Below, in pieces: positions 28,934-64,000 of a stretch of 64,000 bases of DNA. The stretch's first letter is position 1; every line of letters begins with the position of its first letter. A program made the translations under genes and the position numbers. Location: NCBI GenBank assembly GCA_904063045.1, contig CAJFCJ010000005.1, positions 181,310-245,309 of the forward strand. Direction: 5' to 3'. Source of the stretch: Dimorphilus gyrociliatus. Taxonomy: Eukaryota; Animalia; Annelida. Below the pieces are notes generated by a model, which made no database searches, was not told where the DNA came from, and saw only the letters and a program-made list of their open reading frames with translations.

Positions 28934-30831
28934 ATGGATAGTTTAAAGGAATTGGTATTTAAATATCTATTAAAAAACTATCATATTCTATTAAGAGAGA
29001 AGAAATGTACTTTAAATTCAATACTGGAGGAATTAATTGAACGTTTGGATGATTATTTCTATGGAATACCTGAAGATTTATTCAAATTTCTTAAAAATGG
29101 TCAAAACTCTATTAAAAGGATAAATATACACGGAAATCGAATTACTAATCCTCAAACTTTATCGTTTCTAAAGGATTATCAATTAAATAGTGTGATTATT
29201 ACTCAAATGAATGTAATTTCGTTAAGCAATTGGATTGAATACTTGAATATTGATTACTTGGAAGAGTTATCATTAAAGAAATGTAAAATATATAAGAATA
29301 TACCAAATAATATTGAAATATTCTTTAAAACTGCACCAAAGAGATTTAACGATTTCGCTAATATAGAAAATGAAATTGGTCATATTTTTCCGTTATTCAC
29401 CAATTTAAAATCATTGAATTTATCATCAACTGCAATAGATAATGAATTTTTATATTTTATATCAAATAATATAGAAACTATCGAAGATTTAAACATTTCA
29501 AATACTTTAATAACCAATTTAACACCAATTGAAAATATGAGAAGATTAAAAATATTGGATTGTTCGTCTTGTTTAAATTCATCTATACAACAAACATATT
29601 CAATTCTCTTGAAGATGAAAGATCTTATCTGGATTGATTTATCGTTAAATTTTAAAGAAATTCATAATTATCAAATTATTGAAGATTTATTAACGAATGG
29701 CAATTGGCAATCTATAAAAACTATCTTACTAGGTCGTCTTCAAAACTTGTCTGTAGATATTTTAAGGTTGTAGACTATAGGCTTGGAATAGAATAAATAT
29801 GATATATATTACGGTCAATGACCTTTATCAACTCATTTCTTTTTATTGTTTCCAGAGAATTTCTCTCCAGACACAATGGTATAGAAACTTTTGTCGTTAA
29901 CATTGAAAATGGACAGTTTGTTAGCGATGACAAGCATACGTTTATTAATTTATCAACACAAAACTATCAGGTACTTTTAAACAACAATATCGTTTATATA
30001 GGATAAATATTTTAATATGCAAATTAGATTGAAGAAAATAGCGAAGACAAGGTGAATAACCTTTTAAAGATCTACTATAAGTCGGTGAAAAATAAGGAAT
30101 ATATCCATCGTTTAATCGAATATTGGGGTTCAACTTTTGATAGAATTCTTCTAAACACCAATGAAATAGACGTAATAAACGTAAGCCTATAAAAAAAATT
30201 AAATGTTCAATTCAGTTGAACGATGAATAATATTTCCTCTCTCTTCTCTTCTTTTTAAGATATTTATCGATTATATCGAAGATTTTAAATATAACGAATT
30301 GAATTGTCAAAAGAATATCAACACTTTTTGGGAAATTTTAAAGATTCTTTATTCAATTCCAATTAATTGTTTAACATTTGAAATTCAATGTAAAATTTTC
30401 ACTTTTTGCTATAAATTCTTTATAGAGATGAAAGGAAATTTTCAAAAATATCCATCTTTTCAACTTTTATTGTTTATCTTAAAGAAATATCAAAAATGCG
30501 ATTATTTGGTTAAAGATAAATTCTATTTAACAATTGGATTATTTGAAGTTTTACTTTGGAAAGGTGAAAATTGCCAACAAAAAGCCATTGAGATACTTGA
30601 AGAAATCTTAAGAAACTATTACATATTAAAGGTAAAAGATCTATTCTAGGGAATAAGATATTCCTTTACTTAATCCTTATTTAACAGTTGCCAGAGAATT
30701 TTGAAAAGGAAGATGTTAATCTTGAACAAACACGCTTCAATTTTGAAGAGAGAGAAAATATTGGATATCAAAAGAAAACAAAGAAGAAGAAGAGTAAACG
30801 GTTTAGAAGTATTTTTTCATTAAGTAAATAA
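28934..30831 (+). CDS. ZYG11/ZER1-like BC-box LRR protein, about five exons
   Basis: N-terminal MDSLKELVFKYL (BC-box-like) and ZYG11-type LRRs (LKSLNLSSTAID, IEDLNISNT, LKILDCS). Short introns near 29767, 29970, 30181 and 30632; helical C-terminal exons end FRSIFSLSK*. Confidence 0.65.
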
Positions 30832-30989
30832 ATGTATCAAAAGACAAACTCTGCAAGAGTTTACGGTCCACGGGCTGTTAATTCCATTTATAATTACTAC
30901 TACTACTACTAATACCATTGACTGAAGGTTTCTATTTATCTGTTTTTAATAACAAAACTATTTTGAATACATGACTATTTAATTCACTT

Positions 30990-31350
30990 TTGCGTTACTA
31001 AAGATAAAACTCGGGATCTTTAATGAGAAAAAAGATGACTCCTACTATAGAGATCTTTTTGTTCTCTTCTTTGTACCTGAAACAATACTTATAACAAACG
31101 CTCTGATGTTTAATGCATCGATAGAAGCTTCTCGAAAGGGAGCGAAACTCACTTCATCAGCAAACGTCAAAGAAGATAATAAAGATCGAAACGAGTCTAT
31201 TATGCTTATATTAATTTCAACCTACTATGCATTATGTTCAATACCAAATGCGATGCTATTTATATATACTTAAGATATAATTTACCAAATCCAACAATGG
31301 AGTATGCTAGTTTTTTAAAGAGAATGGCTCTACTCGCAGAACATTTCCTC
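30990..31350 (+). pseudogene. Class A GPCR fragment (TM5-ICL3-TM6)
   Basis: Translation YYRDLFVLFFVPETILITNALMF...KDRNESIMLILISTYYALCSIPNAMLFIYT*; flanking frames are disrupted by stops. Confidence 0.6.
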
Positions 31351-31962
31351 AAAACGAATGAGTAACGATAGTTTGTCACAAAACAGTTTGTCTAGCTAAT
31401 TACGTTTGAATGATTCGTACCCAGGAAATTGTAATTACAAACTAATATAAATAGATACGTCATAACTTATTAAAGATAATTTCTGCACTAATACAAACGA
31501 AATTTGTTCCTTTGAATATTAGTTTTGTGAGTTGAGTACAGATAGATAGTTTCTTTAAGATACTCTATAGAATCACCGATTGAATTCTATCAATTTAGAG
31601 ACAAAGTGATTCAAAACTAAAAAAGAATTCAAATTTTCAAGGTTAACTATTTTAATGTTAATCTTATTGAATAGGATAAAAATACGAAACTGGAATTATT
31701 AAAACTGCTTGTGATTTACTGCAATAAAAAGTTTAACATTTCGTATTCAATTGACAAACAAAGGATACTAAATATAAAATCATTGTATTGAACACTTGTA
31801 AGACAATTAATGACAGTTGATTTTGAACTTTTTCAGTTTTTTATTTATATCGAAAAAGTATTGTGATTTGTTACTAATCGATTGTTAGCACTTGTTTTTA
31901 AATGAAAAATGATAAAGTCTAAAGAAATTCGTCATTCGCTTCTATTCTCTTGGTTTAGGACA

Positions 31963-32946: not shown

Positions 32947-33314
32947 AGATATTAGGGTTAGGGTTAGGAGAAAACAGAAGGAAAATCATTGATTAATGAA
33001 ACGATATAACAATCATCTAAATGGGATTTTTGTTATTAATATCGCCTATATGTTATAAGTGTTACTTGTTAATTAACTGATTGACGAAAGACGTTTCGGT
33101 TCATTATTAATAATTAATTAGCTAATCTACTAAGCCTATACCCTAATTGCTATCAACTTACTTCATATCTGTTTGTTATACAATTGATTAATTAATAAAA
33201 AGAAGAATAATTGATGACTCAGCATTTTTTTTTCAATTGTAAAATCTCTTCGTCTTTTTTAGAACAAACATATTGTTCATAATTATTCTTTTTGTTTTTG
33301 TATTTTTAAGAAAC

Positions 33315-35275: not shown

Positions 35276-38200
35276 CAATGTGTACATTAGATACAGATTG
35301 TATTTACGATGGAAAATGTATTAATGGAACATGTAAATGCGATAATCCAATCTTGAAAGGTTCTTGTCATTTAGGTAAAAAGAAATTCATTAAAATTATT
35401 ATAAATTATTCAATATAATAAACAATATATAGGCTCAAAATATTTGATTATTCAAGAAGAATGTTCTATTGAAAGTTTAACCTACTTTAAGGCGTCTAAT
35501 TTGTCGGATTGCATTGAGAATTGTACTTCAAACGACAATTGTACAGCTGTTACTCTGCTTGTAAATTTTAATGTTCTTTTTTGTTTTTTAAAACAAATTT
35601 GCTCATTTCCTTTATCACCTCCCTCAAATTTGCCTGATAGAATATATACTGTTCTTTTTAAAGGTAGATAATAAGTTACTGTTCTAGTCGTTTATTATAT
35701 ATATATAGAAAACTTTGAAAATTTATTCTAGATTCTGAACAATCGTTATGTGGACATGATGATTTGAGTACAACCCATATAAGGGAATGTATTGAATTTT
35801 TATGGAATAAGCATACACATTGCTCATCAAATGGATTAGGATTGACAGACAATATGAATAAATGGTTGGGAAATATGACTGTATTTTCAATTAAAGAAGA
35901 AATGATTGAAATAAGTAAAAACTCAGTTCATTTTTCAAAAGTAAACTCTCAAACAGCCAGTAAAGAATTATATAGAAGTTTATGCTACGGAAATCTATCG
36001 CCTGGAAGATATAATATAGCTTTTGGAAAGAAAATACTTCATAATATGGTTTCTAGTTCGTCCTCAACAATTTACAACATTAATCATCTAGTCGACGGAG
36101 TTACTAATCCAAATGCTAATTTGGGCGGTTGTCTGCAATTGTTTAAATCAAATTTACCGACTCTATGGTTCGCTATCGATTTAAAAACAAATTATATTGT
36201 AAGAAGAGTAATTATCTATCCACAGAGTAAACAGATAGGTTAATTATATTATTAATATTTTCTTGCTATTCAATTATTTATGAATTCTAAATTTTTCATG
36301 TTTGAATAGGCGATCTAGAATTAAAAATTACTGTCTTAGAAAATGAACCTGTCGATAGTATCAATCCAAATCTAATTGATCCTTATCAAATCTGCACTCG
36401 AAACGTTACAATTTCATCGGATTCCGAAAGAAAAACTATTGATTGTCAAGCTAAACTTTTACCAGCAAGATATACAGTCTTTTTCACAGAATCTATTGAT
36501 AATCTAACAATATGCGAAGTGGAAATATTTACAAGTAAAAAAAGAATATATATAAAAAAAGAGAACATTATCTTTGCATTGAAATTTCTCTTTTTTTTTT
36601 GTAAATCTCGATTAAAAAATACAATTTAAATTTAATTTTCTAACAAATATTTAGGTGATTTAGCTTTGAATGGACAAACTTTTACATCTAGTGTAAAGAA
36701 TGAAGCTTACGGGGGTTTTGCCGTTCAAGACGCAACCAGTTCTATTGGCTTTAATTCAAGAGATCAAGCGGAAAATTGGTTTAGTGTACATATAGATGGA
36801 AAATATATTATCTATGGCCTAGATATATTTGGAATAGACTACAAAAAATTAAAAATATACGTAATTAATAGAAATTATCTATTGGATAAAGAGACAAACG
36901 ATTCGGAATTATGTAATAATTTTAAAAATGAAGGCTATTTCGAATATTTATTCTGTCAATGTAAAAATCATTTAATCGGCGAATTTATTGTAGCTAAATC
37001 AAAAGCGTATTTAAATATTAAAAATCTACAAATATGGGGATTATTTCAAAATGATTCAAGTATAAAAATAATTTGAATTTCAAGGTTAAATCTCTAACAA
37101 AATCTCTTTTCTTTTATATTCTTAAAGGTTTAGTTAATATTGCTTATAAAAAACCTACTTGGCAATCTTCAACATATATTTATTTCTTTTCAAAACCGTA
37201 TTACTCTTATTACGCAACAGATGGACAAAATAATGACAAGTTCTCCAGAACTTTGTTTTCTTTCAATCATCTGTGGTTTTGCGTTGATTTATTATTAATG
37301 TATAGAATTGATTATATTGGAATTCAAACAATCACTTCTAACAACTACAATAAAGTCTTTTCATACAAATTCAAGATTATAGAGAAAAAATCAAGAATAA
37401 ACGTTAATGAGAAACTTTTAAATTCGGATTGCTATACAAAAGATCAAGCTTCAACTGACGAAATTGGTGAAACAGTGGTATGGAATTGTTCATTTGCTAT
37501 TAAATACGGTCGATATATATATATAGATAGTTCAAGTCAAATTATAATTAATGAATTATACGCTTATGGCAAACAACTAGAGGAAAATTTACAAGTTTTA
37601 TCAAAAGTTTCAACTGTTGATGTTACTTCTAACAAACAATATCACAGTTATCAACATTCGCCATTAAAGATTATTGACGGCAATTTCAATAACATAATTC
37701 CTACTGAATCGTGTACTCTTCTAACGGCGAATGGAGAAAAAATTTTAAAGGTAAATCTCGATAATAAATATCACGTGACTCAAATAGTTATTCAACCTTT
37801 GTATAAGCTTTATTCAGGTAGGTTAATTTATGAATATTATATTCAAGTTTAATTAAATGAATATTCATTATACAGACGTATTCAAAAATGTTGACGTATA
37901 CGTTAAAAATGATACTAATAACTTGCAAGAACTATGTAAAAAGATAACGTTATCTGGGTTGATTCGTAATCTTTTAATAATAGATTGTGAAAGGCCTATT
38001 TACGGAAATCAAGTAATACTAATAAGGAAAGATAATACAAAACATTTATCAATATGCGAAATAAAGATATACGAAAAAGTATATCTTAACGATAAGGAAG
38101 ATCAGTATAATCGGATGAAAATTATGAAAAATACAAGATTAATAACAGACGGTTTTTGTTTAATTAATGAAAAAGTTACAAATCTTATTAATTGTTTCTT

Positions 38201-38372
38201 ATTGTGTAAAAGAAAACAATGTATAACGTTCTCATTTAATCTAATTCAACGTTTGTGCTGTTTATCTTTATATACAGAGTTGAATAGTTACTTTGAAGTT
38301 TCTTACAACGATCTAATTGGACAAGTCTATTCAATGGCGCCCTCTAACTATAATTTATGCAGTAGTTTTTAA
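35276..38372 (+). CDS. EGF-like, PAN, four F-type-lectin/F5-8C-like domains, PAN; paralog A, multi-exon
   Basis: Cys-rich exon CTLDTDCIYDGKCINGTCKC; PAN (SDCIENCTSNDNCTAV); four NIA/LA...DG...W(F)x(I/V)DL...ICE(V/I) units; C-terminal PAN (CFLLCKRKQCITFSF). The 5' start was not located. Confidence 0.7.
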
Positions 38373-38528: not shown

Positions 38529-40028
38529 ATGATCTCTCTGAAAAGTCTCTCATTACGAGTTATATGTAAAAATTTATTGAATCTATATCATATTTGTTTA
38601 CGTAATAATTTAACAATTTGCGATAAATTAGGCAATCAAATATTCGATTATATTAACATTAAAAGGATACATTTAAAAGAAGATGATCTATTGTTATTTT
38701 CAACAGAAATTACAACTTTGACTGAAATTCATTTAAATAAAGAACTTTTGGAAAATATTGGTAAAAGATTCCAATTCTTGAACAATCATTCAATACGAAA
38801 ATTATTTCTATATAACTTTATTAATATCGATTATTTAATAGAGCATATAGATCCTAGAAATATTGAAAATTTACTGATTAATAACTGTTCAATAACATCG
38901 GATTATTTAGGTAATTTGATGGAAAATCAGAGAAAACAATTTAAAGAAACAAACTTGAATAGAGATGTTTGTAACAACTGGTTTACAAACATTTCAACAA
39001 ATTGGACGTTCAATTTGAGAATATTTATCGTTCAATCTTGCGAACTTTCCTACGAAATGGGAACTTTTTTGGGTCGTCAACAACAATTATCATCATTAGA
39101 AATATGTAATGGAAACGTTAAAGAAAATTCTAAACGTTATTTCCTACAGAATATCCCTTCCTCTTGTTCAAATCTAAGTAAATTACTTATGAGAAATTGT
39201 AACCTATCTTCCGAAACGGCAATGTATTTAGGTTTATATATTAACAATCAGAAACAGCTCGACTCCTTAAAGTTGATGGGATTGGATTTGAGATATAGTA
39301 TTGGCGATAATATCTTTAAGAATATCTCTTCAGAGTGCTGCAATTTAAGAGAATTGAACCTAAAATATAGTAAATTATCATTGGAAATGAGTGAATATTT
39401 GGGAATATTTATCAAACGGCAATCGAACTTGATAAAGTTAAATCTTTCAAGAACGAATCTGGAAGGCCAACTAGGAAGAAATGTATTTAAAGACAAGTCA
39501 TCCGTCTGCCGTCTAGAAGAATTATACTTAAATAATTGCAGATTATCGCAAAGTATGAGTAAAAATTTAGCAATTTTCATAGCCAACCAATCAAGACTTG
39601 CCGTATTAAGTTTAAAATGCGTTAACCTAACAGAAGCAATTGGAAATAATTTATTTCATCAGGAGAAATCGAAATGTTGTAATTTACTTCAATTAAATCT
39701 AGCTTGTTGTAATTTATCAATGAAAATGTGTTGGAATTTAGGTCATTTTATTAATAGTCAAACGTTACTTAACAAGCTTAATCTATTGGGAACAAATCTT
39801 GAAGATCAATACGGAAGGTATCTCTTTCAGAATATCTCTTCAAAGTGTTGCAATTTAAGAGAATTGAATTTAAGTTATTGTAAATTATCACCGGAAATGA
39901 GTCAATATTTGGGAAAGTTTATTGGAAATCAAAAAGAATTGTCTATATTCAAATTTGAAGCAACTAATCTTAATGGTAAAATTGGAAAAGATATACTTTC
40001 GAATATTCCAAAATCGTGTTCAATATGA
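38529..40028 (+). CDS. ZER1-like BC/Cul2-box N-terminus plus RI-type LRR protein (499 aa)
   Basis: SLKSLSLRVICKNL start, DDLLLFSTEITTLTEI block, then six 57-aa (28+29) LRR pairs; single exon. Confidence 0.85.
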   Translation: MISLKSLSLRVICKNLLNLYHICLRNNLTICDKLGNQIFDYINIKRIHLKEDDLLLFSTEITTLTEIHLNKELLENIGKRFQFLNNHSIRKLFLYNFINIDYLIEHIDPRNIENLLINNCSITSDYLGNLMENQRKQFKETNLNRDVCNNWFTNISTNWTFNLRIFIVQSCELSYEMGTFLGRQQQLSSLEICNGNVKENSKRYFLQNIPSSCSNLSKLLMRNCNLSSETAMYLGLYINNQKQLDSLKLMGLDLRYSIGDNIFKNISSECCNLRELNLKYSKLSLEMSEYLGIFIKRQSNLIKLNLSRTNLEGQLGRNVFKDKSSVCRLEELYLNNCRLSQSMSKNLAIFIANQSRLAVLSLKCVNLTEAIGNNLFHQEKSKCCNLLQLNLACCNLSMKMCWNLGHFINSQTLLNKLNLLGTNLEDQYGRYLFQNISSKCCNLRELNLSYCKLSPEMSQYLGKFIGNQKELSIFKFEATNLNGKIGKDILSNIPKSCSI

Positions 40029-40091
40029 TTGATAATCGTTCTGTTTTTAATATTAAAACAATACACAATTGATAAACATTGAAATGATTTA

Positions 40092-41459
40092 TTATAAAAG
40101 TAGGCTAAAATCTTTAAAAACATCTGTAAAATCTTTATGAAACTGTAATTTATATTCCAGAACTGAATGTTCAGGATAAGCAGATGTAAGTATTAATTTT
40201 CCGAGGCAAGGTTGTTTCATATGTGTACGAGATGTATATGATATTTTAAGAGTTCCGAGTCTCTGGCATGAGTTGATTAGTATATGGCACAATTTATTAA
40301 ATTCATTATGTATCCTCATATCGTAACTTATGTATAAAAAATGTAAATATTTGCAATTTTTCAGTAAATTCCCTAAATATTGAACTTGTCCTCTGTTCAA
40401 TGAACAATTGTTAACGTAGAGATTCTTTAACTTTAAAAATGACGACCTTAAAGATGTACAAATAGCTTTAAAACCGCTTTCCATACCGGTATTAAAACCT
40501 AAATTCAATTCTTCCAAATCAGTTAGATTTTGAAGTAAATCTGCAAGATTATAGGCTTGCTGTTCGTTTAATAAACATAGAGAAACGTCTATTTTTCTTA
40601 ATCTGCAATTAGATAATTTCAATCCGTAGCACACATCTTTAAATCCCATTTTCAAATCTTGATTAAGGCTTAGATCGATTGATTCTAAGTTTTTTGAATT
40701 TTGTAATAAACTCCCTAAACACATTGTTTGTAAATCATTGATTGAACAATGAGATAAATATAGTTTCTTTAGATTTAAACAAGATAATCTAAATCCATCA
40801 CGAACTGCTCTAAATCCATCATCCGATATACAATTTAAACTTAAATCCAATGATTCCAATTTTTCACAATTTCTCAACAAACGACCTAAATATTGAGCAT
40901 TTTTTCCATTAATTTCACAAAAGCATAAATCGAGCTTCTTAAGCATTGCGCAAGAAGATCGAAGTCCATCGAAAGCGAGTATAAGATTTTCACCTATTTC
41001 ACTGTTGAAACTCAAATCCAAACATTCTAAATTGCAGCAACGTTTCAAGAACTCCCCTAGATGGCGAGTCTGTTCAATCGTCGTTAAACAATGTCGAAGT
41101 GATAATTTCCTTAATGATCTTGGATTAATATTTACGATAATCCCTTCTAATTCGTTAATATCTTTAATATCTAGAATTTCAATTGGATGATCTCTTAAAA
41201 ATTCAAAGTTTTTAACAACAGCAATTTGCTTTTCGCAAAAAGAAACATTCGTTAAAGTAACAACATTCGAACTAAAGAACATTAAATCATCGTTTGAAAG
41301 AGAAGAATAGTTTGAATGCTTTAAGTGTTCAAATATAGAATTACTCACTTGAATAGGTAAACGATATTTATAAAAGACGCATATTTCATAAATTTTAGAC
41401 AAATTATTAACAACAGACACTATCGATAACGTCCTTAAAGATTCCACATACATAATCAT
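40092..41459 (-). CDS. ZER1-like BC/Cul2-box N-terminus plus RI-type LRR protein (455 aa), second subtype
   Basis: VESLRTLSIVSVVNNL...RLPIQVSNSIF...DDLMFFSSNVVTLTNV, then repeats of LESLDLSxN / LKKLxLxxC. Confidence 0.85.
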   Translation of the reverse strand: MIMYVESLRTLSIVSVVNNLSKIYEICVFYKYRLPIQVSNSIFEHLKHSNYSSLSNDDLMFFSSNVVTLTNVSFCEKQIAVVKNFEFLRDHPIEILDIKDINELEGIIVNINPRSLRKLSLRHCLTTIEQTRHLGEFLKRCCNLECLDLSFNSEIGENLILAFDGLRSSCAMLKKLDLCFCEINGKNAQYLGRLLRNCEKLESLDLSLNCISDDGFRAVRDGFRLSCLNLKKLYLSHCSINDLQTMCLGSLLQNSKNLESIDLSLNQDLKMGFKDVCYGLKLSNCRLRKIDVSLCLLNEQQAYNLADLLQNLTDLEELNLGFNTGMESGFKAICTSLRSSFLKLKNLYVNNCSLNRGQVQYLGNLLKNCKYLHFLYISYDMRIHNEFNKLCHILINSCQRLGTLKISYTSRTHMKQPCLGKLILTSAYPEHSVLEYKLQFHKDFTDVFKDFSLLL

Positions 41460-49454: not shown

Positions 49455-49815
49455 CTTTCCAGCTATATTTTCAAGCATTTAATGAGAGAATTTCAAGCGA
49501 TAACCATAAATTTATAGTATAAATTGCTTAGAAGATATGCGATAGCATAGATATTGTATAGCTTTATCAAGCTTTTAAGATATAGCTAGAGCATGTAGAG
49601 GACGAAAACTTTGCTGGAATAAGAGTCTGTATCAGTGTTTTATCTCTAAATGAATATGATAGTGTTTAAAAAGAAGAAAGAGGTCAATGTATTGAATAAG
49701 GTAACTTTTGAAATGGTAAAATATTTGGCAAGATATAATGTATTTTGTAATTTATTAGAACCATAATTTCGTACAAATTGTTTAGAAAGTACATGTATTT
49801 GAAAGTTAATAGGTT

Positions 49816-51765: not shown

Positions 51766-53170
51766 CCTCTCTAGCTACAATTTTATTATTTTGTATGAAA
51801 GAACTCGTTATAATAACTTTGAAAATTATCACCAAAAAATTGCCTAAAAGATACGCCCAAGATACTTTTGTTTCTTATCGGTTTTAAGACTTTGTTCTGG
51901 GATGTTATCTATACTAATTATTTAATTTCTACTTTGCAGTTTACTTTCTTATAGTTAAGCATAAATAATTTTATATCGTTATCAGTAATAGGCTAAGATT
52001 GGTAAGCAATGAATTCTAAATATGCAGCATTTTGTACTTTCGTTTTGTGAAATTAAATATATTTATCTTTAAGTTGGATTAATTAATTGGTTGATAGGAC
52101 CAAATTACGCAATATCATCATGTTAAGACCATAGGTTATGTAGTTCAGTAAAACATTTACAAACTTGAATGAAAGAATATGGAAAGGAAAAACTCTTAAT
52201 CCAGATTTATTAAGTGTAGACAGCTTTACTCGAGACGGGAGTATCTATTTTTTATTGTTACGGCTTAAAGCATGTCTTCTATCACTCCTCTACCAGGTTC
52301 CAATACATCAGCAGCATATGCTAACTAACCAACCTAGATAGGAGGTCTTTAGATTATTTCGGTACTAGAGAGTTCTAGGGTTGTAGATATTATTATATTG
52401 ATAATCAATACAGATTTTACGGTCAATGAAAAACTTCCTTTATTGGAAGTTTATAATTGTATTGCTGTATACGTCTGAAGCTTATAATGTATATGTTTTA
52501 AGTATATTTGAGAGATTTGTTACGGTTGTTCCAATAAAGGTGTCTTTCGGCTCGCCTCAACAGCAACCTAGAGGAGAGTTCTACGGTATCCATATTCTGT
52601 GTTCCAGAGGATAAAAAGTCAACTACAGATAACGCAGCTAGCTACACTAGTAGAAAACAAATAAGCATATTGGATAATCTCGAAAATGTGTGATATCGAG
52701 CTCAACAACTGCAGTTTTAGAAAGTATAAAATAAAGATGGAGAAATTAAAGATAAAGTTTCATGATAAGATTTGCGGTTGGTTTTAATATAGTTGATGTA
52801 GGCTTACCACAGACTGAAGAAATAGAATCTCTTTGTTCCCTTTTGCTGTTTATCTACTATGTATTAGGTTAGTTGTCGTTTAACCTATGGTAAAATAATA
52901 ATATATAGTATAGATTGTTAATTTGATAAATATGAATAGAATTGAAATAATGAATCTGGTAAGATATACTATTATAATCTTTCTATTAGAAAATATATAG
53001 AGGCGTCAACAATTTTAACCTGTAATTAAAAGTTGGTCTACCAAAATTTACGATGTCCACATTTTCCTGTCGTTTACTTTATATAGCTAATTACTATGCT
53101 GTATAAGAGCTAAAACTCAATCATTCTTTCCTTAAAAGGATACAAGAACGAAACTGCTCTACTACGTCAA

Positions 53171-53431
53171 ATGAAAATATATCGAAATACGAGATTATCG
53201 AATAGTTTCTTTTGTTTAATTTCAAGCTTTAAAGAAACGATTATAAGCTGCTTTAAACTATGTACAGATAATAATTGTTTGTTATTATCTTTCGATGTTG
53301 TAAAGAAACTTTGCTGTATCTCTTTGGTAAGAAGTCTGGAATTATATTTTCAGAATTATGCTAATAGTTTTATTGGGCAAGTTCGTAATGAGACCAGTGA
53401 AGTTTACAAACAACAATTGTGCAATTATTAA
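53171..53431 (+). pseudogene. Orphan duplicated last exon (PAN) of lectin paralog B
   Basis: Identical translation to 46876..47136, but upstream exons were removed by the duplication and deletion. Confidence 0.85.
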
Positions 53432-53802
53432 TTGACAAACTAGCTAAGACAATAAATAGAAAAGTCGATGTTTCTATACAATTCAAAAAACTCTTGAATG
53501 CGCTTTTTCTAAATGTATAGTTAACTTTGAACACAATAATAAATTGCTTTATGATCAGTTGAGAAAGAATTTAATCATCTTGATTTTTAGATTAGATTAA
53601 GTAGAACAAGGAAGAAATATGAATGATAGTAACTGTTTTAAAGATTAGATGACAGATTTCGTTTATTTTAACTAAATGAAAAAGGAAAGAAAGACTGTAA
53701 TACTAAATCAAATTACATAACTTTTTAGTTTGGCATTTTCATACAAGTCAAAATAGAATAGAATTCTCTATTCTGAACATAGAGATGACTCTAATTTTGA
53801 TC

Positions 53803-54796
53803 TTAAACTATTAAAAATAATAACATTGACGAGTACATTACATCATTAGCTTTACAACCTGTGTAATCTACATGTAGATTGTCTCCTGCATTCATTCTAA
53901 CCAAGCCTGCTTTTGATATTAAATTAGACTCGGTACTCTCTGGTAATTTTCTCAATAACCTAAACATTTTGACTTGATTAACATGAACAGAAACCTCTGC
54001 AATGCTGTGTCTCTGAACACATTTTTTCAGACGTTTGACAATCTTCCACTTCAATTGGTACACCCGGACATTCGGCACCACCGTTTATTGGTGGAGGATT
54101 ATTACAGTTTCTTGTTCGAGTTCGTATTCCATCACCTCTACAGCTCGGTTCACAATCACTCCAAGGTGACCATTCAGACCAACCTCCTGGTCTTGGACAG
54201 TTCGCATCTTCCGCTCGAACACAAAGCTTTATGGTACACGTTCTCGGATTAACTATAGGGCTAAAAAAGAAACCGGGAGGACATTGTTGGGGCTAAGATA
54301 CTCCATTTTCGCAATGATAATAGATTCTACAATCGACTAAACTCGGAACCGTTGCATTAAGATTTGGTGAACATTCGTCCGTTTTTGTAAAACAAGGAGT
54401 TGAAAAATCTTTCTGGTTTGGTTCGCATTGATTAGGTTTTTTATGAAACACCTCATTATTGGACGTTGGACAATCAGCATATTCAGGTTCAACACAAGTT
54501 ATAATTGTACAATCTAACGTTGTAAATCTAAAGAAAAGACCAAGAGGACAGTTCTGTGGATAAGCTTTACCATCGATACATTGATAATAGGCACCGCAAA
54601 ATTGCGGATCTCTATAGGCTACATCAATTGGTCTGAGATTGTTGTCAACAGGGCAATTGAATGAAATTGAAGGTGAAAAGAGCGTTGTAAAGAAGACTGT
54701 ATACGAATATTCGTAAAGTGTATTTAACAAATCGGTGGACTGTAATAATAAAAGTTAGAGGAACTTACAAGCTATAATAAAAGTATTCCTTTTCAT
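53803..54796 (-). pseudogene. CBM14-TSP1-C1q copy A' (nonsense mutation and ~1-kb deletion)
   Basis: A-type exon 1 at 54796; TGG changed to TAG at 54293; TSP1 is fused out of frame to the end of the last C1q domain at ~54020-54033 through a short filler. Confidence 0.9.
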
Positions 54797-55153
54797 CTTT
54801 CCAGCTATATTTTCAAGCAATGAATGAGAGAATTTCAAGCAATAACCACAAATTTATAGTATAAATTCTTAGGAGATATTGCATAGATACTGTATAGCTT
54901 TATCAAGCTTTTATGATATAGCTAGAGCAGGAACAGGACGAAAAATTCGCTGGAATAAGAGAGTCTCTATCAGTGTTTTATCTCTAAATGAATATGAGAG
55001 TATTTAAAAAGAAGAAAGAGGTCAATGTATTGAACTAGGTAACATTTGAAATGATAAAATGTTTGGCAAGATATAATATATTTTGTAATTTATTAGAACC
55101 ATAATTTTGAATAAATTGTTTAGAAAATACATGTATTTGAAAGTTAATAGGTT

Positions 55154-57103
55154 CTAAGACACTAATAAAAGAGACATTGATGAAACCATATCAGAAGTTG
55201 ATATACAACCATCATATTTCGTTGTTAAAATATCCCCTTTGTTCATTTGTATTAATACCGATTTAGATATTAATTCTGAATTTTCATTATCAGATCTCCA
55301 TTTCAACATCCTCATTGTCACTAAATTATTAACTTCAACAAACACTCTTAAATGACTTCTATATCTAACGACAACGCTTATATCGATATAATATGTACCG
55401 TTTACGGGTGATGTATAGGAGAAATTATTAAAATTCCACGAATTTTTTGTATCCATGCTTTTTCTATTAAACTCTATCTTGCTAGGCGATATTGTACATG
55501 ATTGTGAAGATGACATACTTTGCCAGACAAATAGAATAGGTAAACTATCATTCAATTTATATGCTAACAAATAAGTAGGAAAACCTTCAGATGAGTTATG
55601 TCCTCCTTCAATAAAATACTCAAAGCTCGTATCATCGTCAATCAAACGAATGAAACTACGAGATAATTGATCGGAACTATCAATGTGTTTACTGTTACGT
55701 CTTATTCTTTCAAATGGATTATTTGTTGAATTTATGAAAATGGAAACATTTACATATTCTGTTGAAAGAGGTCTAATGCCAAAGTTAACAAAATAGACTC
55801 CACCTTCTCTACTAATAAACCTTCTATTCGAGTTAACAGCCACAAAGTTTCTTATATTTATAATAGAGTCGAGAGCAAGATAGCGTTCATCAGAAGTGAT
55901 CATTTCGGAACCAGCGAATAAATAATTATTAGATGAATATTTAAATCCTAACCAGGAAGTATCCTTTCCAAAATTATCACCTGCCAAGAATGAAGAAGTC
56001 AGTCTTTGGTAAACGTATGGTCGATATAAACTGTTCAAATTGAATAGACAATTTCTAGTTATCAGATCAAAGCTTTTCTCATTTCTTTCTCTCTTTAAAT
56101 CCATTCTTTTACCCAAATTCTCAAGGGAAAGATGAGTTCCACTATTTCCCCCTATAGTAGCAGTTATAGACATATAATATAAACCAGACTTTTTGATATT
56201 TAATGAATTGTCTGCATTATTAAATAAATCGTCTTGATTAACATCAATCGAATTCCATTTAACTCTCTCCTGAGAAAGAATTGCGCTTGTCTCTAAAGTT
56301 ACCATAAACGCCGGTTGTCTGTAAATGCCACATTCGGGTGTTTGACAATCTTCCACTTCAATTGGTACACCCGGACATTCGGCACCACCGTTTATTGGTG
56401 GAGGATTATTGCAGTTTCTTGTTCGAGTTCGTATTCCATCACCTCCACAACTCGGTTCACATTCACCCCAAGGTGACCATTCAGACCAACCTCCTGGTCT
56501 TGGACAGTTCGCATCTTCCGCTCGAACACAAAGCTTTATGGTACACGTTCTCGGATTAACTATAGGGCTAAAAAAGAAACCGGGAGGACATTGTTGGGGC
56601 CAAGATACTCCATTGTCGCAATGATAATAGATTCTACAATCGATTAAACTCGGAACTGTTGCATTAAGATTTGGTGCACATTCATCAGTTTTTGTATAAC
56701 ACGGATTTGAAAAATCTTTCTGGTTTGGTTCGCATTGATTAGGTTTTTTATGAAACACCTCATTATTGGACGTTGGACAATCAGCATATTCAGGTTCAAC
56801 ACAAGTTATAATTGTACAATCTAGCGTTGTAAATCTGAAGAAAAGACCAAGAGGACAGTTCTGTGGATAAGCTTTACCATCGATACATTGATAATAGGCA
56901 CCGCAAAATTGCGGATCTCTGTAGGCTCCATCAATTGGTCTGAAGTTGTTGTCAACAGGGCAATTGAATGAAATTGAAGACGTAAAGAGCGTTGTAAAGA
57001 AGACTGTATACGAATATTCATAAAGTATATTTAATGAATATGTTAACTGTAATAATAAAATTTAAATGAACATACAAACTATAAATACGTTGCTGTTTTT
57101 CAT
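55154..57103 (-). CDS. Secreted CBM14x2-TSP1-C1qx3 protein, copy B' (intact)
   Basis: Exon 1 is 57103..57076 (MKNSNVFIV). Exon 2, 57003..55154, was translated by hand and is open and in frame with ORF 55154..56758. Confidence 0.88.
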
Positions 57104-58543: not shown

Positions 58544-58576
<33 letters not shown>

Positions 58577-58856: not shown

Positions 58857-60218
58857 CTATTTCCTAATGAAATTGTCCGTTAAATTTGTATGTTGAAGCT
58901 TTAACGTTTGAAGTTTCTTTTGATATCTGATAAAACTTTCCAGTTGTTCAGACATATCTGACGATAAATTACAAAATTTCAAATCCAACTCTTTAACATT
59001 GCAGACCGATGACGAAATATTCTGGAATAAATATTTTCCAGTATCGGCTTTTAAGTTTGTATAATCTAACTTTAATGTATTGAGTTGAGTTTGATATCCA
59101 ATGAATCTACCTAAATACATACTCATATTAGATGAGAAATTGCAACATCCAAAATCGAGAAATCTTAGATTGCAGCAGGATGGAGAGATATTTTGAAAGA
59201 TATTCTTTCCAATATCTCCTTCTAGATTTGTACAAATAAACTCCAACATATCTAGTTGGGTTTGATTGCCGATAAACTTGCCCAATTCTATACTCATTTC
59301 CGGTGTTATTTTATAGAATGCTAGATGAAGCTTTTTCAAATTACAACAGGACGATGGAATATTCTGGAGGATATATTTTCCACTTTCACCTTTAAGAATA
59401 CTGAACTGCCAGATGAGGGTATCGAGTTGTTTTTGATGTTGAATAAACTTGCCTAAATAGGAACTCATACTAGGTGTGAATTTACAATAGGCAAGTTCAA
59501 GTTTTGTTACATTACAACAGGATGATGATATATGTCTGAATACACTTTTACCAATGTCACTTTCGAATGTTGTATGGCTAAGATAGATCTTTTTAAGTTG
59601 AGTTTGATATCCGAAGAATTTTCCAAGATATTTACCAGTTTCCGATGATAATGAACAACCGTTTAATTTGAATTTCTGAAGATTTTTACAAGATGAACAA
59701 ATCCCTTTGAAGATATTTTTACAAAAATCCTTTTCAAGGTTTGTATGAAGGAATGAAAGTTTTTTTAAAGCTGTTAAATTTCTGAATATATTCAATTCTT
59801 CAATTGATTCAACAAAACACTTGTTCAATACTAATTCTTCAATGAAATTCTCATTTAAATACAACCATACATCATTCATATCGTCGACATTGTATATATG
59901 CAATACCTTAATGGGATGATTCTTAAGAAATTCAAAATTTTCCAATTTACTCTTCATTAGGCAGACATTCGTCAGTGTCATAATCCTATATGAAAAGAAT
60001 TTCAGTTCATCTTCGTTAAGATAATCCCTCTTTTGACAAGCGTAATCGTAAATAAGATTGGCTAGTTGTTGAGGATATACGAAATTATATTTTATGCAAA
60101 CTTTACTAAGTGGATATAAACAAATAGATATTGCTCTTAAACATTGATTTTTCAACGAATACGATATTTTCTCGTAAGTCTTATCCATCGACGTTTTAAA
60201 AAAGAATGTATCAGCCAT
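58857..60218 (-). CDS. ZER1-like BC/Cul2-box N-terminus plus RI-type LRR protein (453 aa)
   Basis: SLKNQCLRAI...YPQQLANLIYDY...DELKFFSYRIMTLTNV, then five 57-aa LRR pairs. Confidence 0.85.
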   Translation of the reverse strand: MADTFFFKTSMDKTYEKISYSLKNQCLRAISICLYPLSKVCIKYNFVYPQQLANLIYDYACQKRDYLNEDELKFFSYRIMTLTNVCLMKSKLENFEFLKNHPIKVLHIYNVDDMNDVWLYLNENFIEELVLNKCFVESIEELNIFRNLTALKKLSFLHTNLEKDFCKNIFKGICSSCKNLQKFKLNGCSLSSETGKYLGKFFGYQTQLKKIYLSHTTFESDIGKSVFRHISSSCCNVTKLELAYCKFTPSMSSYLGKFIQHQKQLDTLIWQFSILKGESGKYILQNIPSSCCNLKKLHLAFYKITPEMSIELGKFIGNQTQLDMLEFICTNLEGDIGKNIFQNISPSCCNLRFLDFGCCNFSSNMSMYLGRFIGYQTQLNTLKLDYTNLKADTGKYLFQNISSSVCNVKELDLKFCNLSSDMSEQLESFIRYQKKLQTLKLQHTNLTDNFIRK

Positions 60219-60783: not shown

Positions 60784-60816
<33 letters not shown>

Positions 60817-60995
60817 CAGTATATATATATAGAAAGAGAGAGAGAGAGGGGGGAAAGTTTTGACATTGTTTTTCATCATCAAATGACTAAGAAACGAATT
60901 GTTAATATGTTAAAAGAATAAAGAATATATACACACAATCAGTATATAGAGAATATGTTAAAAAAAAGCAAGTTAAAATAAGCAAAAGAAAGTTA

Positions 60996-62207
60996 TTAAT
61001 AAGAAATATTACATTCGGAAGAAGATAGATAATGATTATGAATTTTCTCAACTTCGCTTATTGGATTTGTTAAATACAAATCTAATTTTTGTAAATTATC
61101 CTGATTTCTAATTACTCTTCCCAATGGTTCAATCATTTCCGGTGAGAATTGGCACATTCTCAATGAAAATTCTTTAAGATTATTAAAATTCGAAGGAATA
61201 TATTTAAAGATATTAATTCCAATTTCATCTTTAAGGTTAGTATTTCCAAAATCTAATTTTTGTAATTGAATTTGTAGGCCTATAAATCTTCCCAAATATT
61301 CGCACATGTCGTAAGAAAATTCGCATTTACTCAATTTAAGTATTTTAATATTACAGCATAAAGATGAAATATCCTTGAATAGATTCTTTCCAATTTCACC
61401 TTTAAGAATGATATTAGATAATTCCAATTTATTAAGGTTTGTTTGATAGCCAATAAACTTTCCAAGGAGTTGACCAATATCCGATGTAAATGAACAATCG
61501 TTTAAATTAAGTTCTTTTAGGGAAGAGAATGCTGGTGGAATATTCCGGAATATATCTCTTCCAAGTTCACCTTTAAGGTTTGTTGAACAAAGATTTAAGA
61601 CATTAAGCGTAGTTTGCTTTCCAATAAATGCTCCCAGACAAGCGCCAATATCTGATGATAATTTACAACATATTAGTTCGAAGGATGTTAAACTACAACC
61701 AGATTGAGAGATGCTCTTTAGGAAACTATTACCAATCTCTTCGTGTGAATTAAATTGCCTTAATGAGAATTTACTTAAATTTTTTACTTGTTTAAAAAAG
61801 TCAAACATAACTTTTGAATTAATAAAACAAGATGCAAATTTTAATTCCTCTATATATAATGGATTAACATTCCTTATTAAGCAGTCGAGATCAATAGCTC
61901 CGTGGATATATACGATTTGAACGGGATGCGAATTCAAAAATTCAAAACTCTCCACATTTTCGAATTTATAGCCTAGTAGTTTAATTTTCGATAGTGTCAT
62001 CATCTTTGAGGAGAAGAATAATAAATCATCGTTGCTTAGGTATTTTTTACCCTTTAGAGAATAGTCAAAAATTAATTGACTTATTACGGGAGGAATATGA
62101 ATGTTTTGAAATTGGTAGAGATGATAGAGATATTTCAAGTTTTTTGTTACAGACTTTATCGAAAGAATCTTCAACGACTTTAATTCTCCTACCAATAAAT
62201 TATCCAT
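60996..62207 (-). CDS. ZER1-like BC/Cul2-box N-terminus plus RI-type LRR protein (403 aa)
   Basis: SLKILSIKSV...IPPVISQLIFDY...DDLLFFSSKMMTLSKI, then four 57-aa LRR pairs. Confidence 0.85.
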   Translation of the reverse strand: MDNLLVGELKSLKILSIKSVTKNLKYLYHLYQFQNIHIPPVISQLIFDYSLKGKKYLSNDDLLFFSSKMMTLSKIKLLGYKFENVESFEFLNSHPVQIVYIHGAIDLDCLIRNVNPLYIEELKFASCFINSKVMFDFFKQVKNLSKFSLRQFNSHEEIGNSFLKSISQSGCSLTSFELICCKLSSDIGACLGAFIGKQTTLNVLNLCSTNLKGELGRDIFRNIPPAFSSLKELNLNDCSFTSDIGQLLGKFIGYQTNLNKLELSNIILKGEIGKNLFKDISSLCCNIKILKLSKCEFSYDMCEYLGRFIGLQIQLQKLDFGNTNLKDEIGINIFKYIPSNFNNLKEFSLRMCQFSPEMIEPLGRVIRNQDNLQKLDLYLTNPISEVEKIHNHYLSSSECNISY

Positions 62208-62751
62208 ATCTCGATCACGCTCTTTTATTTTCTATAAAACGTTCGCATCACTGAGCGATAATTCAGTAGGATGTGGAACTCTCCTACTGGAACTGATTTC
62301 ATTTTAACGTTTCGTCTTGACGTTTTTTTTTCTTTCAGTCAATTTAATTTAACGTTAAAACTATATATTAACTTATATTATGTAAATATGTGTACGTAAG
62401 CAAAATTTACGAATTTAAAATTGTTAATAATAAAGGGTGAAAAAAAGAAGAAGGTAACAATAGACTTTATTTAAGGCGTATAGCTTTATTTTTATTATGA
62501 AAATGGGACACCGTAACATCTTTGGAATATTATTCGACGCAGAGAGAATACATATAAAATCAATATTTGCATACGCTTTCTAGAGTTTCAAAGTAATTAA
62601 ATTAACTAGGTTGTACGTATGAAAGTTTTTCATAATTACAGTCGAAAAGTATTCATATATGTACCATAAACTTATTTTTTATTATTTCATTTTATCGCTC
62701 AAAGACTAATGATCATTTATTAAATGGTATATATTAAGTAGTAATATACAA

Positions 62752-64000
62752 ATGGATACAATTGAGAATTCTTGGAATATATTCTTATCATTAAGAAGTC
62801 AATGTTTAGAATTTATAGCAAAAAATTTGCTCAATATTCGTAAACTTTGCCAATTTCATAATTTTATTGTTCCCCATCAATTAGGTGATCTTATCTTTGA
62901 ACACGCGAATAGAGAAAATGAATTTTTAACTAAAGATGAATTGAAATTATTCTCATCGAATATATTAACATTAACAAAAGTGAATATAGACAAGGAAAAA
63001 TTTGGTAATGAAGAGAATTTTGAATTTTTAAAAAATCATCCAATTTGCAGTTTTCATACTTCAAGTTTTGATTATTTAGATAGTTTAATGTTGAATATCG
63101 ATGCAAAGAATATCAAAGAATTATCATTATACAATTGTTCTATAAAATCGAGTCAAGTTTCAGAGTTTTTTAAAGCGGCTTCTTCGTTGAGAAAGTTGAA
63201 AATTAATAGTATGAACCTTGAAGGTGAAGAATGTAAAAATATCTTTAAAGAATGCCTTCCGGTATGCTGTAATTTGAAGGAGATTCACTTGAATTTTTGT
63301 CAATTATCACCGGAAGTTGGTGAATATATTGGAATATTTATAGGTCATCAAACTCAATTAAGTATATTAAATCTTTCGAATACAAACCTCGAAGACGATA
63401 TTGGTAGATGTATGTTTGAAAATATTACGCCATCTTGTTGCGGTGTAAGAGAATTGAATATGAAAGGTTGTAAATTCTGTCCAAAGATGAGCGGATACCT
63501 GTGCAAATTTATAGGATATCAGACTCAACTCGTTACGTTGAATCTAGAAGATACAAATCTAAAAGGAGATATTGGAAGAAATCTCTTTCAAAACACGTCT
63601 CCCTTGTGCTGTAATATTGAAAAATTGTATCTTATCTACTGTAAATTTTCACCGGAAATGAGTGAACATTTAGGTAAATTTATCGGAAATCAAAAATACC
63701 TTAAAGTAATTAATTTTAAAGGAACAGACCTTAAAGGAGATATTGGAAATAATATCTTTAGAGATACAATTCCTTTATCCTATAATCTAAGAAGTATTGA
63801 CCTAAGCCATTGTGAATTTTCCAGTGAAATGAGCGAAAATTTAGGAAAGTTTATTGGAAGACAAATTCAGTTGACAAGGTTAAAATTCTTTTTATCAAAT
63901 CTTAAATCGGATATTGGTATGAATATTTTTCGTAACATTTCAAAGTCTTGCTGTAATTTAGAATATTTGAGTTTAAGTAGTTGTTACTTGTCGTTGAGAA
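62752..64000 (+). CDS. ZER1-like BC/Cul2-box N-terminus plus RI-type LRR protein, runs off the window (absent from the ORF track)
   Basis: ATG at 62752: MDTIENSWNIFLSLRSQCLEFIAKNL...VPHQLGDLIFEH...DELKLFSSNILTLTKV; LRR units recur every 171 nt (~63270 to ~63954). Confidence 0.85.
   Translation, partial: MDTIENSWNIFLSLRSQCLEFIAKNLLNIRKLCQFHNFIVPHQLGDLIFEHANRENEFLTKDELKLFSSNILTLTKVNIDKEKFGNEENFEFLKNHPICSFHTSSFDYLDSLMLNIDAKNIKELSLYNCSIKSSQVSEFFKAASSLRKLKINSMNLEGEECKNIFKECLPVCCNLKEIHLNFCQLSPEVGEYIGIFIGHQTQLSILNLSNTNLEDDIGRCMFENITPSCCGVRELNMKGCKFCPKMSGYLCKFIGYQTQLVTLNLEDTNLKGDIGRNLFQNTSPLCCNIEKLYLIYCKFSPEMSEHLGKFIGNQKYLKVINFKGTDLKGDIGNNIFRDTIPLSYNLRSIDLSHCEFSSEMSENLGKFIGRQIQLTRLKFFLSNLKSDIGMNIFRNISKSCCNLEYLSLSSCYLSLR

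Follow-up and report, generated by a model that had tools for sequence, protein, structure and literature searches.

Intronless genes of Dimorphilus gyrociliatus that join a ZYG11-type head to NLR-type leucine-rich repeats probably mark chosen proteins for destruction

The window analysed here is a 64,000-nucleotide stretch of the genome of Dimorphilus gyrociliatus, a tiny worm of marine habitat. The first-pass annotation had reported five single-exon genes with a shared N-terminal motif in it, and it was found by checking the open reading frames (ORFs) that all five are intact and intronless. Each encodes a head of about 110 aa at the N terminus, followed by five to eight super-repeats of 57 aa (28+29), and all five ORFs end within this leucine-rich repeat (LRR) array. 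In-frame stops lie 0 to 13 codons upstream of the ATG in each gene, and the spacers measure 157 to 777 bp for four of the five.

Gene 38529 (38529..40028, + strand) encodes 499 aa, with the head at aa 1 to about 110 and seven super-repeats of the ribonuclease-inhibitor (RI) type at aa 111-493; its BC box, SLKSLSLRVI, is located at 38535-38564, and its Cul2 box has C in place of proline. Gene 40092 (40092..41459, - strand; 455 aa) consists of the head and five RI-type super-repeats, with the BC box SLRTLSIVSV at 41412-41441 and the Cul2 box LPIQVSNSI at 41334-41360. Its LRRs are of a more divergent subtype (Pfam LRR_6, E 1.4e-9), and the ORF exactly matches a 455-aa protein of a public collection, P0009 (100% identity over all 455 aa). 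The head of gene 58857 (58857..60218, - strand; 453 aa) precedes six RI-type super-repeats and contains the BC box SLKNQCLRAI (60129-60158) and the Cul2 box YPQQLANLI (60051-60077). Gene 60996 (60996..62207, - strand; 403 aa) encodes the head with the BC box SLKILSIKSV (62148-62177) and the Cul2 box IPPVISQLI (62070-62096), and then five RI-type super-repeats. The 335-aa protein P0001 lacks the BC box because its alignment with gene 60996 begins only at an internal Met, at 62003. A word-based protein search with the head returned just one match, a protein of 335 aa with 100% identity to a part of the query sequence. Gene 62752 (62752..64000 within the window, + strand) forms a divergent pair with gene 60996 across a spacer of 544 bp; it encodes 582 aa in the full contig, where it ends about 500 bases past the window, and comprises the head (BC box SLRSQCLEFI, 62788-62817; Cul2 box VPHQLGDLI, 62869-62895) and eight RI-type super-repeats.

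The only Pfam families found in the five window genes and 37 long paralogs were LRR_1, LRR_4 and LRR_6. In these same proteins there was no Pfam match to NACHT, Death, TIR, CARD or any death-fold domain, nor to the ARM family PF22964 (ZER1-like_2nd), and no F-box family was detected in a scan of the window genes at E values up to 1. The highest Kyte-Doolittle mean over 19 residues was only 1.51, and therefore no transmembrane (TM) segment is indicated. These results agree with the earlier description of the proteins as devoid of NACHT, death-fold and TM domains. The window itself contains no NACHT match; the genome has 98, of which the nearest is about 5 kb past the window end on the minus strand.

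A different kind of gene begins at 28934. Its exon 1 (28934..29767, + strand) encodes a degenerate VHL-box head and ZER-type LRRs, for which the ZER-type LRR profile gave an E value of 3.9e-24. In BLASTP this ORF aligned with exon 1 of the canonical ZYG11/ZER1 gene at E 2e-18, colinear over 277 aa, and the shared N-terminal motif can be aligned across it and the five window genes. The splice donor, AG/GTTGTA at 29767/29768, shares its codon position and phase with the AG/GTATGT donor of the canonical gene, and a candidate acceptor, ttccag, ends at 29855. An exon-by-exon search for downstream exons drew a blank in Pfam, in tblastn from the retrieved relatives and in BLASTP against canonical exon 2. 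By these alignments, 28934 is a genuine ZYG11-like paralog. The first-pass annotation was right to call it ZYG11-like, but it is not an identifiable ancestor of the five intronless genes, as had been suggested: it is one of about 80 ZYG11-like loci, which form a separate, well-supported clade. The canonical ZYG11/ZER1 gene of this genome was identified by four exons above the ZER1-like_2nd cut-off and is spliced. Weak ZER1-like_2nd matches at two further loci were not accepted as a sign of ZYG11 kinship: one locus, on contig C12, has an ORF that looks like a beta-catenin, and the other, at C6:652 kb, has an ORF that looks like a kinase with ARM repeats.

It had been proposed that the head of the five genes parallels the BC-box and Cul2-box N terminus of ZYG11 and ZER1, and both profile comparison and structure prediction indicate that it is homologous to the VHL box of these proteins. 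An hhalign comparison of 37 heads of the RI class with five canonical ZYG11/ZER1 first exons (two of the five above the Pfam LRR_Zer-1 threshold) gave a probability of 98.3% and an E value of 2e-14 over 100 colinear columns, and BLASTP of one head against a canonical ZYG11/ZER1 exon gave E 4e-5. The AlphaFold2 (AF2) model of the gene 60996 head (pLDDT 93.5) shows three helices ahead of the LRRs. Plain Foldseek with this model returned nothing with an E value as low as 0.001 (ZYG11B ranked first by TM-score, 0.61, with E 0.26), so re-alignment was needed. Residues 10-170 of human ZYG11B could be superposed on the model with an rmsd of 3.3-3.6 Å: for 9bid_A, Z was 8.8 and rmsd 3.6 over 140 aa (model 7-150 on chain 13-170), and for 9lk2_A, Z was 8.4 and rmsd 3.3 over 143 aa. 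These Z scores are little above those of generic LRR matches, and a chain of FBXL17 reached 8.9 but with an rmsd of 7.5; the ZYG11B chains were the only PDB matches with both full span and low rmsd. Among PDB sequences, head HMMs did not retrieve human ZYG11B; profiles A2 and A6 gave chance-level matches only, and profile A4, which includes the first LRR, pulled in RNH1 and NLRPs. Therefore, the link between the head and ZYG11 depends on the ortholog in the worm genome and on structure.

The two boxes were evaluated quantitatively in the 37 long paralogs. The published BC-box consensus was present in 22 of them, the other 15 missing the strict form, and the published Cul2-box consensus (phi-P-x-x-phi-x-x-x-phi) in 34. 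Both boxes occurred in order in 21/37, and in 19 of these the spacing was fixed at 27 residues. Shuffled controls gave 5% for the BC box, 14% for the Cul2 box and 0.4% for both in order, so the shared N-terminal motif is far beyond chance. In human ZYG11B, L18 inserts into Elongin C and the L18S substitution abolishes activity, and F50, P51 and V54 contact Cul2 (PMC13201589; bioRxiv 2024.06.24.600508). Across 70 paralogous heads, which have diverged to about 30% identity, the BC-box Leu is present in all and is the sole invariant column; the Cul2-box Pro is kept in 66/70, and relative to it the residues at -1 (69/70), +3 (69/70) and +7 (70/70) are hydrophobic. The heads retain the positions with which ZYG11B touches Elongin C and Cul2. 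The linker between the boxes is a helix in the worm head model, in contrast to the long loop typical of ZYG11B (PMC13201589).

The body of the proteins is, on profile and modelling evidence, an LRR array of the RI/NLR type. The 57-aa repeat was confirmed in every window gene, and a profile that includes the first repeat matched RNH1 and NLRP1. The full-length AF2 model of gene 58857 (pLDDT 89.3, pTM 0.88) matched the LRRs of RNH1 and NLRPs at Z 25-26, and in Foldseek at E 1e-12; FBXL17, FBXL2 and SKP2 also occurred among the structural matches of the worm models. The ZER-type LRR profile matched none of 38 long ORFs (at least 344 aa) and about 22 short ORFs, including 28934. Together with the absence of PF22964, this supports the view of the first-pass annotation that alternating 28/29-aa LRRs, of the RI/NLR type, take the place of the ZER-type LRR and ARM body. 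The closest LRRs within the genome (29-46% identity) belong to NACHT-LRR genes and lie downstream of a same-strand NACHT at at least 19 loci; at two loci, C43 and C98, the NACHT and LRR matches have the same reported open-frame length. The probable source of the array is the worm's NACHT-LRR gene set, through domain shuffling. Variability among the repeats is highest at the x residues of LxxLxLxx, on the concave face, a pattern that is common in LRR proteins generally and is no test of selection.

A genome-wide count of heads gave 143 matches, of which about 43 fall within long open frames, and so the family is large, as had been anticipated; about 20 of the matches outside the window are fragmentary or interrupted by stops. 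In nearly every ORF, 0-5 residues separate the first Met from the start of the head, and in about 65 paralogs the head comes directly after this Met. If near-identical or truncated copies and one pair at 61% are set aside, distinct paralogs are at most about 46% identical, and for this reason dS is saturated. The predicted partners are present: there are two Elongin C genes, the C-terminal 53 residues of which differ from human at three positions, none of them a BC-box contact, so that the BC pocket of both is identical to the human one, and a Cul2 gene is located at C9:714371-716388. The family genes sit among chitin-binding/TSP1/C1q genes and NACHT genes.

We consider it fairly likely that the RI-type family encodes CRL2 substrate receptors in which a ZYG11-type head carries an NLR-type LRR horseshoe, each paralog with its own specificity; dozens of intronless worm genes would then probably serve to mark chosen proteins for destruction. 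In this model, the head would recruit Elongin B/C and Cul2-Rbx1, and a protein captured on the concave side of the repeats would be ubiquitinated, with degradation as the expected outcome. The LRR horseshoe would thereby stand in for the ZER-type LRRs and the ARM domain that reads N-degrons.

What such receptors might recognise can be read in two ways. The first, which is possible but doubtful, is that their targets are endogenous proteins of the germline, embryo or cell cycle, with no part in immunity, and that copy number rose through germline competition or selfish elements. Two precedents are of this kind: PRAME, which has the same design and is amplified, positively selected and germline-expressed (PMC4878042, PMC1262708), and the Caenorhabditis zyg-11 family of 19-37 genes, which gave rise to the antidote zeel-1 (PMC3144186). 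Against these stand the kinship of the worm LRRs with the NACHT-LRR genes of the genome and the neighbourhood of chitin-binding/TSP1/C1q and NACHT genes. Moreover, the worm paralogs are old, being at most 46% identical, unlike PRAME amplification, which consists of recent bursts. The NLR-type repeats and the gene neighbourhood make immune targets plausible by analogy. A fuller version, which we hold to be rather unlikely, is that about 40 genes of this 78-Mb genome form a second effector arm of the invertebrate NLR repertoire, in which arrays derived from NACHT-LRR genes and placed on a Cul2 head would recognise microbial or viral proteins, with direct ubiquitination and destruction of these proteins as the result instead of NACHT oligomerisation.

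It is improbable that the head recruits no ligase and merely caps the LRR solenoid with helices, the proteins being LRR-only binders (decoys or regulators of the parent NLRs, or RI-like inhibitors). Such a role would fit the 15 of 37 long members that miss the strict BC-box consensus, the lack of the Cul2-box Pro in gene 38529 and the resemblance of the LRRs to those of NLRs. It would also fit the absence from the worm RI-type proteins of the ARM domain, which in ZYG11B makes further contacts with Elongin B and C (interfaces 2 and 3, PMC13201589). A mere cap, however, needs no solvent-exposed contact residues at a fixed 27-residue spacing, nor does it account for a BC-box Leu that alone is invariant among heads at about 30% identity, or for a Cul2-box Pro and hydrophobic partners kept in 66-70 of 70. 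Finally, the idea that these are decaying duplicates, or pieces of larger spliced genes (e.g., NACHT-LRR) mis-read as single-exon, could draw on the partial match of P0001 and on the fragmentary heads elsewhere, but it is highly improbable given five intact ORFs of 403-582 aa despite at most 46% identity, the stops close upstream of the ATGs and the short spacers, the heads directly after the first Met in about 65 paralogs, the lack of NACHT in the window and the exact match of ORF 40092 to a 455-aa public protein.

If the heads do recruit Cul2, the CRL2 receptor family would have been built by keeping the ligase-docking head constant and swapping everything that serves recognition. With a body probably drawn from the animal's own immune-sensor repeats, NLR-type recognition would be linked directly to ubiquitin-dependent degradation, in a parallel to the mammalian PRAME family that is probably independent. 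The ZYG11 family, which usually has one to three genes per animal, would run to well over 100 loci here, in a genome that is among the smallest of any animal, and the worm would offer a compact, intronless set of natural 'degrader' scaffolds. To our knowledge, the targets of the PRAME family are still largely unknown.

The closest known system is ZYG11/ZER1 (ZYG11B, ZER1 and C. elegans ZYG-11), the CRL2 receptors of the Gly/N-degron pathway, in which a homologous VHL box is likewise followed directly by LRRs and of which the same worm genome has a canonical ortholog and the ZYG11-like paralogs. The window genes differ in having an RI/NLR-type array instead of the ZER-type LRR (PF25013) and the N-degron-binding ARM (PF22964), and in being intronless, whereas the canonical gene is spliced. 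The F-box/LRR proteins (FBXL, SCF receptors) similarly place a small helical adaptor-binding head directly before a substrate-selecting LRR solenoid, but no F-box family was matched in the window genes, their motif fits a BC box and a Cul2 box, and the predicted adaptor is Elongin C, not Skp1. They also differ from the SOCS-box (Cul5) receptors, since the Cul5-box motif LP-phi-P was found in 0/71 heads and the Cul2-box pattern is present instead. With NACHT-LRR proteins they share the alternating 28/29-aa LRR type, and the worm NLR arrays are the closest relatives of the body; lacking NACHT, death-fold, CARD and TIR domains, their predicted output is ligase recruitment and not nucleotide-driven oligomerisation.

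The first-pass annotation went too far in naming this a candidate for an undescribed system, since expansions in Caenorhabditis (PMC3144186) and in mammals (PMC4878042, PMC1262708) were already known. The Caenorhabditis zyg-11 family (19-37 genes) arose with domain shuffling; the zyg-11-like LRR region was preserved in its copies, three of which acquired a TM domain at the N terminus (PMC3144186). In the worm, by contrast, the head was kept and the whole body exchanged, and the count is higher, with 143 head matches. PRAME is a germline-expressed CRL2 receptor (PMC4878042, PMC1262708) that contacts Elongin C and Cul2 through a VHL box at its N terminus (PMC4878042); the body shows homology to ribonuclease inhibitor, with a PSI-BLAST E value of 1e-12, and the family is strongly amplified in mammals, with positively selected sites clustered on one face (PMC1262708). 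Compared through these published descriptions rather than by sequence, the likeness lies in the design, with RI-type LRRs placed behind a head for CRL2 docking, and in the many gene copies. Neither PRAME nor LRRC14 was among the PDB or Atlas matches of the worm proteins. Because the worm heads fall with ZYG11/ZER1, and the LRRs behind them with NLRs of the same genome, an origin independent of PRAME is likely.

The window spans C5:181310-245309 of the Dimorphilus gyrociliatus genome, which is 78 Mb in length and AT-rich. The first-pass annotation had placed five single-exon genes in the window, with a common N-terminal motif, alternating 28- and 29-aa leucine-rich repeats (LRRs), and neither NACHT nor transmembrane (TM) domains, and each of these points was upheld. 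All five genes, named by their start positions, were found to be uninterrupted ORFs: 38529 (38529-40028, + strand, 499 aa), 40092 (40092-41459, - strand, 455 aa), 58857 (58857-60218, - strand, 453 aa), 60996 (60996-62207, - strand, 403 aa), and 62752 (from 62752 onward and past the end of the window, + strand, 582 aa in the full contig). Each ATG is preceded by an in-frame stop 0 to 13 codons upstream, and four of the genes lie 157, 544, 544, and 777 bp from neighbouring ORFs; genes 60996 and 62752 are divergent, with a common spacer of 544 bp. The N-termini can be aligned across about 110 residues (the head), and 5 to 8 units of 57 aa (28 + 29) per gene are present C-terminal to it. A Pfam scan of the five genes returned LRR_1, LRR_4, and LRR_6 only, the 98 NACHT matches of the genome all fell outside the window, and no 19-residue stretch of the head-LRR proteins had TM-like hydrophobicity.

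The match of a 335-aa protein from a public collection (P0001) to gene 60996 begins no earlier than an internal Met at 62003, and therefore the BC box and Cul2 box of the head are missing from P0001. If P0001 is the public model of this gene, public gene models may hide the head.

The identity of the head was evaluated against the one canonical ZYG11/ZER1 gene of the genome, located at 583.8-586.4 kb of contig C6, of which four exons score above the Pfam ZER1-like_2nd cut-off. In BLASTP comparisons with its first exon, the ORF at 28934 in the window gave a colinear match over 277 aa (E 2e-18) and the head of gene 60996 an E value of 4e-5. A profile of 37 heads, built solely from long LRR genes, matched a profile of five canonical-type first exons (two of the five above the Pfam LRR_Zer-1 threshold) with 98.3% probability and E 2e-14, over 100 colinear columns starting at the N-terminus. 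Residues 1-150 of the 60996 protein were modelled confidently with AlphaFold (pLDDT 93.5), and the model contains helices at 12-22, 24-34, and 40-52, followed by LRR strands. It superposes on human ZYG11B in Elongin BC complexes, with Z 8.8 and an rmsd of 3.6 Å over 140 residues for 9bid_A (model 7-150 onto chain 13-170), and Z 8.4 and 3.3 Å over 143 residues for 9lk2_A. Human ZYG11B was alone among solved structures in matching over the full span with low rmsd; the other matches mostly covered the LRR part only, and those that spanned more had higher rmsd or lower Z. Sequence HMMs of the heads alone did not reach human ZYG11B, and therefore the link to ZYG11 rests on the worm ortholog and on structure. 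The first-pass reading of the head as a ZYG11/ZER1-type N-terminus is supported by the profile match and the superposition.

The residues that would dock the head to its partners were also compared. In ZYG11B, the pocket that receives Elongin C L104 is formed by C22, L23, L26, F50, P51, V54, and L58 (PMC13201589), and three of these residues, F50, P51, and V54, are in contact with Cul2 as well (bioRxiv 2024.06.24.600508). Only one column, the BC-box Leu, is invariant among 70 paralogous heads (70/70), which otherwise share about 23-33% identity. A hydrophobic residue at +8 is likewise found in all 70, the Cul2-box Pro in 66, and hydrophobic residues at -1, +3, and +7 of this Pro in 69-70. The published BC-box consensus (S,T,P)Lxxx(C,S,A)xxx-phi (PMC4878042) is present in 22 of 37 long members and the consensus phi-PxxphixxxPhi in 34; both occur in the right order in 21 of the 37 (0.4% of shuffled controls have both), with a fixed 27-residue spacing in 19 of these 21. 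All five window genes have the strict BC box and four the Cul2 box, gene 38529 having C instead of the Pro. The Cul5-box motif LP-phi-P was found in none of 71 heads.

Partner genes are present in the genome. Elongin C is a single gene in most animals; here there are two, at C7:4250133-4250234 and C9:2345401-2345505, with two exons each and nearly identical proteins. The C-terminal 53 residues have three differences from human, none at a BC-box contact. The extra copy might supply the enlarged family of receptors. A Cul2 ortholog was found at C9:714371-716388 (top PDB match Cullin-2, E 7.6e-60), and Cul5, Cul1, and Cul4 are likewise present. Against human, Cul5 scores 592 bits over 399 aa and Cul2 206 bits over 414 aa, only 29 bits more than Cul1. 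Cul2 is the far more diverged of the two, and it may be evolving fast together with its receptors. The head-LRR proteins are predicted to be substrate receptors of the Cul2 ubiquitin ligase CRL2, a role that is well motivated but unproven.

The repeats behind the head are of another type than those of ZYG11. When the head profile was extended over the first repeat, it matched the LRRs of ribonuclease inhibitor and NLRP1. For the 58857 protein, the full-length model (pLDDT 89.3, pTM 0.88) matched NLRP5/14/2, NLRC4, and RNH1 with Foldseek E values of about 1e-12 and Z 25-26 over some 390-400 residues. The genomic LRRs nearest to those of 60996 (29-46% identity, E down to 1e-42) lie within large open frames, and at least 19 of these loci are preceded, on the same strand and within a few kb, by a NACHT match. 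On contigs C43 and C98, the reported open-frame length is equal for the NACHT and LRR matches (2,436 and 2,449 aa, respectively), which we read as NACHT and LRR in one frame. The LRR body is therefore of NLR type, with a probable origin from NLRs. Across 26 repeat units, the positions with the highest entropy are the x residues of LxxLxLxx, which lie on the concave face; this is expected of a binding surface, yet it is also typical of LRRs generally. Taken together, the reading of these genes as a ZYG11-type head on NLR-type LRRs is strongly supported.

The genome-wide count proposed in the first-pass annotation gave 143 matches to the head profile: some 43 are in frames of at least 390 aa, another 80 or so in frames of 240-389 aa, and the remaining 20 or so are fragments or stop-bearing. 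We collected 73 head-bearing ORFs from the window, 60 fetched loci, and a small number of others, and in nearly all of them the head begins 0-5 residues past the first Met. RI-type (ribonuclease-inhibitor-type) units were found in 34 of 38 ORFs of at least 344 aa and ZER-type LRRs, the kind in ZYG11/ZER1, in none of the 38; the latter were confined to short ORFs, about 22 of them, among which is 28934. Of 37 long members scanned with Pfam, none returned a NACHT, Death, or TIR domain, in line with the expected absence of NACHT and death folds. Once one pair at 61% and the copies that are near-identical or truncated are set aside, the nearest long paralogs have about 46% identity; the long paralogs are old.

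Of the short heads, 21 group in the head tree as one clade (support 98/89), the canonical gene and 28934 among them, and the long-class heads fall outside it. An AG|GT donor closes the first exon of 28934, matching the canonical gene in codon and phase; no later exons were recognisable when searched exon by exon. The earlier suggestion of a spliced ZYG11-like relative at 28934 therefore stands on the BLASTP match and the donor; 28934 is a ZYG11-like sister within the short-head clade, and not an ancestor that can be identified. Seven ORFs of 243-301 aa (L015, L016, L017, L021, L067, L068, and L074) have neither RI-type nor ZER-type LRRs detectable, and their heads join the long class; they may represent a third body type.

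An exhaustive profile search of 1.84 billion representative proteins returned 240 at the cut-off of E ≤0.001. Twenty matches were traced to source, one to D. gyrociliatus and 19 to Logan assemblies, and no member from another named species was seen among these 20 (150 of the 240 were listed). The family member DgyrCDS8598 of D. gyrociliatus was among the matches, and eight further matches were 100% identical to D. gyrociliatus loci. Contigs fetched for four proteins all came from runs SRR23372216-231. The organism of these runs is a relative, with a rhodanese-domain protein at 61% identity, no introns in the gene there either, and a GC content of about 25%. This organism has its own canonical ZER1 gene, a head + RI-LRR gene of 776 aa, and tandem arrays of head-bearing genes of about 590 aa each. 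One 18-kb contig (L080, SRR23372229) holds seven genes of about 590 aa head to tail on one strand, an array denser than any in the window, and one of the seven (P0057) carries the head. Another protein, P0125 (834 aa), has a Macro domain at aa 118-214 (E 2e-13) followed by a ZYG11-like head at aa 253-346, and would be a further domain combination in the family.

In the window, paralogous ORF blocks of unassigned family flank the convergent pair 38529/40092 on the + strand, at 35764-38372 (159, 259, and 171 aa) and 43671-46034 (160 and 275 aa). Three tandem genes at 47508-57103 (- strand), which by the look of their sequence are of chitin-binding, TSP1, and C1q type, lie between both groups of head-LRR genes. 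Elsewhere, ZYG11-like head genes are intermingled with NACHT genes, of which the genome has at least 98 matches, in clusters at C5:250-585 kb (NACHT at C5:250346, 324439, 337444, and 377918, for example) and C16:971-1036 kb; such intermingling gives the exon shuffling proposed here an opportunity to occur. Some long members have truncated copies as well: L025 (C95:66207-66509) is 88% identical to L026, and L065 (contig C53) is 98.5% identical to L073. A NACHT match lies about 4 kb downstream of L025 on the same strand, and L025 could be either a splice partner or a pseudogene. An immune role for the head-LRR family is plausible, although speculative, because of the NLR-type repeats and this neighbourhood of chitin-binding/TSP1/C1q genes and NACHT genes.

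The worm design is thus a ZYG11-type head on NLR-type LRRs, intronless and in about 40 copies, beside about 80 ZYG11-like genes. The long class differs from ZYG11/ZER1 proper in having neither ZER-type LRRs nor an ARM domain, and from NLRs in having no NACHT, and it is a member of neither. In described architecture, as distinct from sequence comparison, it resembles PRAME (VHL box + RI-like LRRs): PRAME carries at its N-terminus a VHL box that binds Elongin C and Cul2 (PMC4878042), and its body is homologous to ribonuclease inhibitor in a family that is strongly amplified and positively selected (PMC1262708). The number of zyg-11 genes is one or two in most animals and 19-37 in three Caenorhabditis species, and the antidote zeel-1 arose from a Caenorhabditis zyg-11 copy that gained a TM domain (PMC3144186). 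We found no description in the literature of a ZYG11-type head joined to NLR-type LRRs, a combination that brings together the themes of PRAME and of the zyg-11 expansions.
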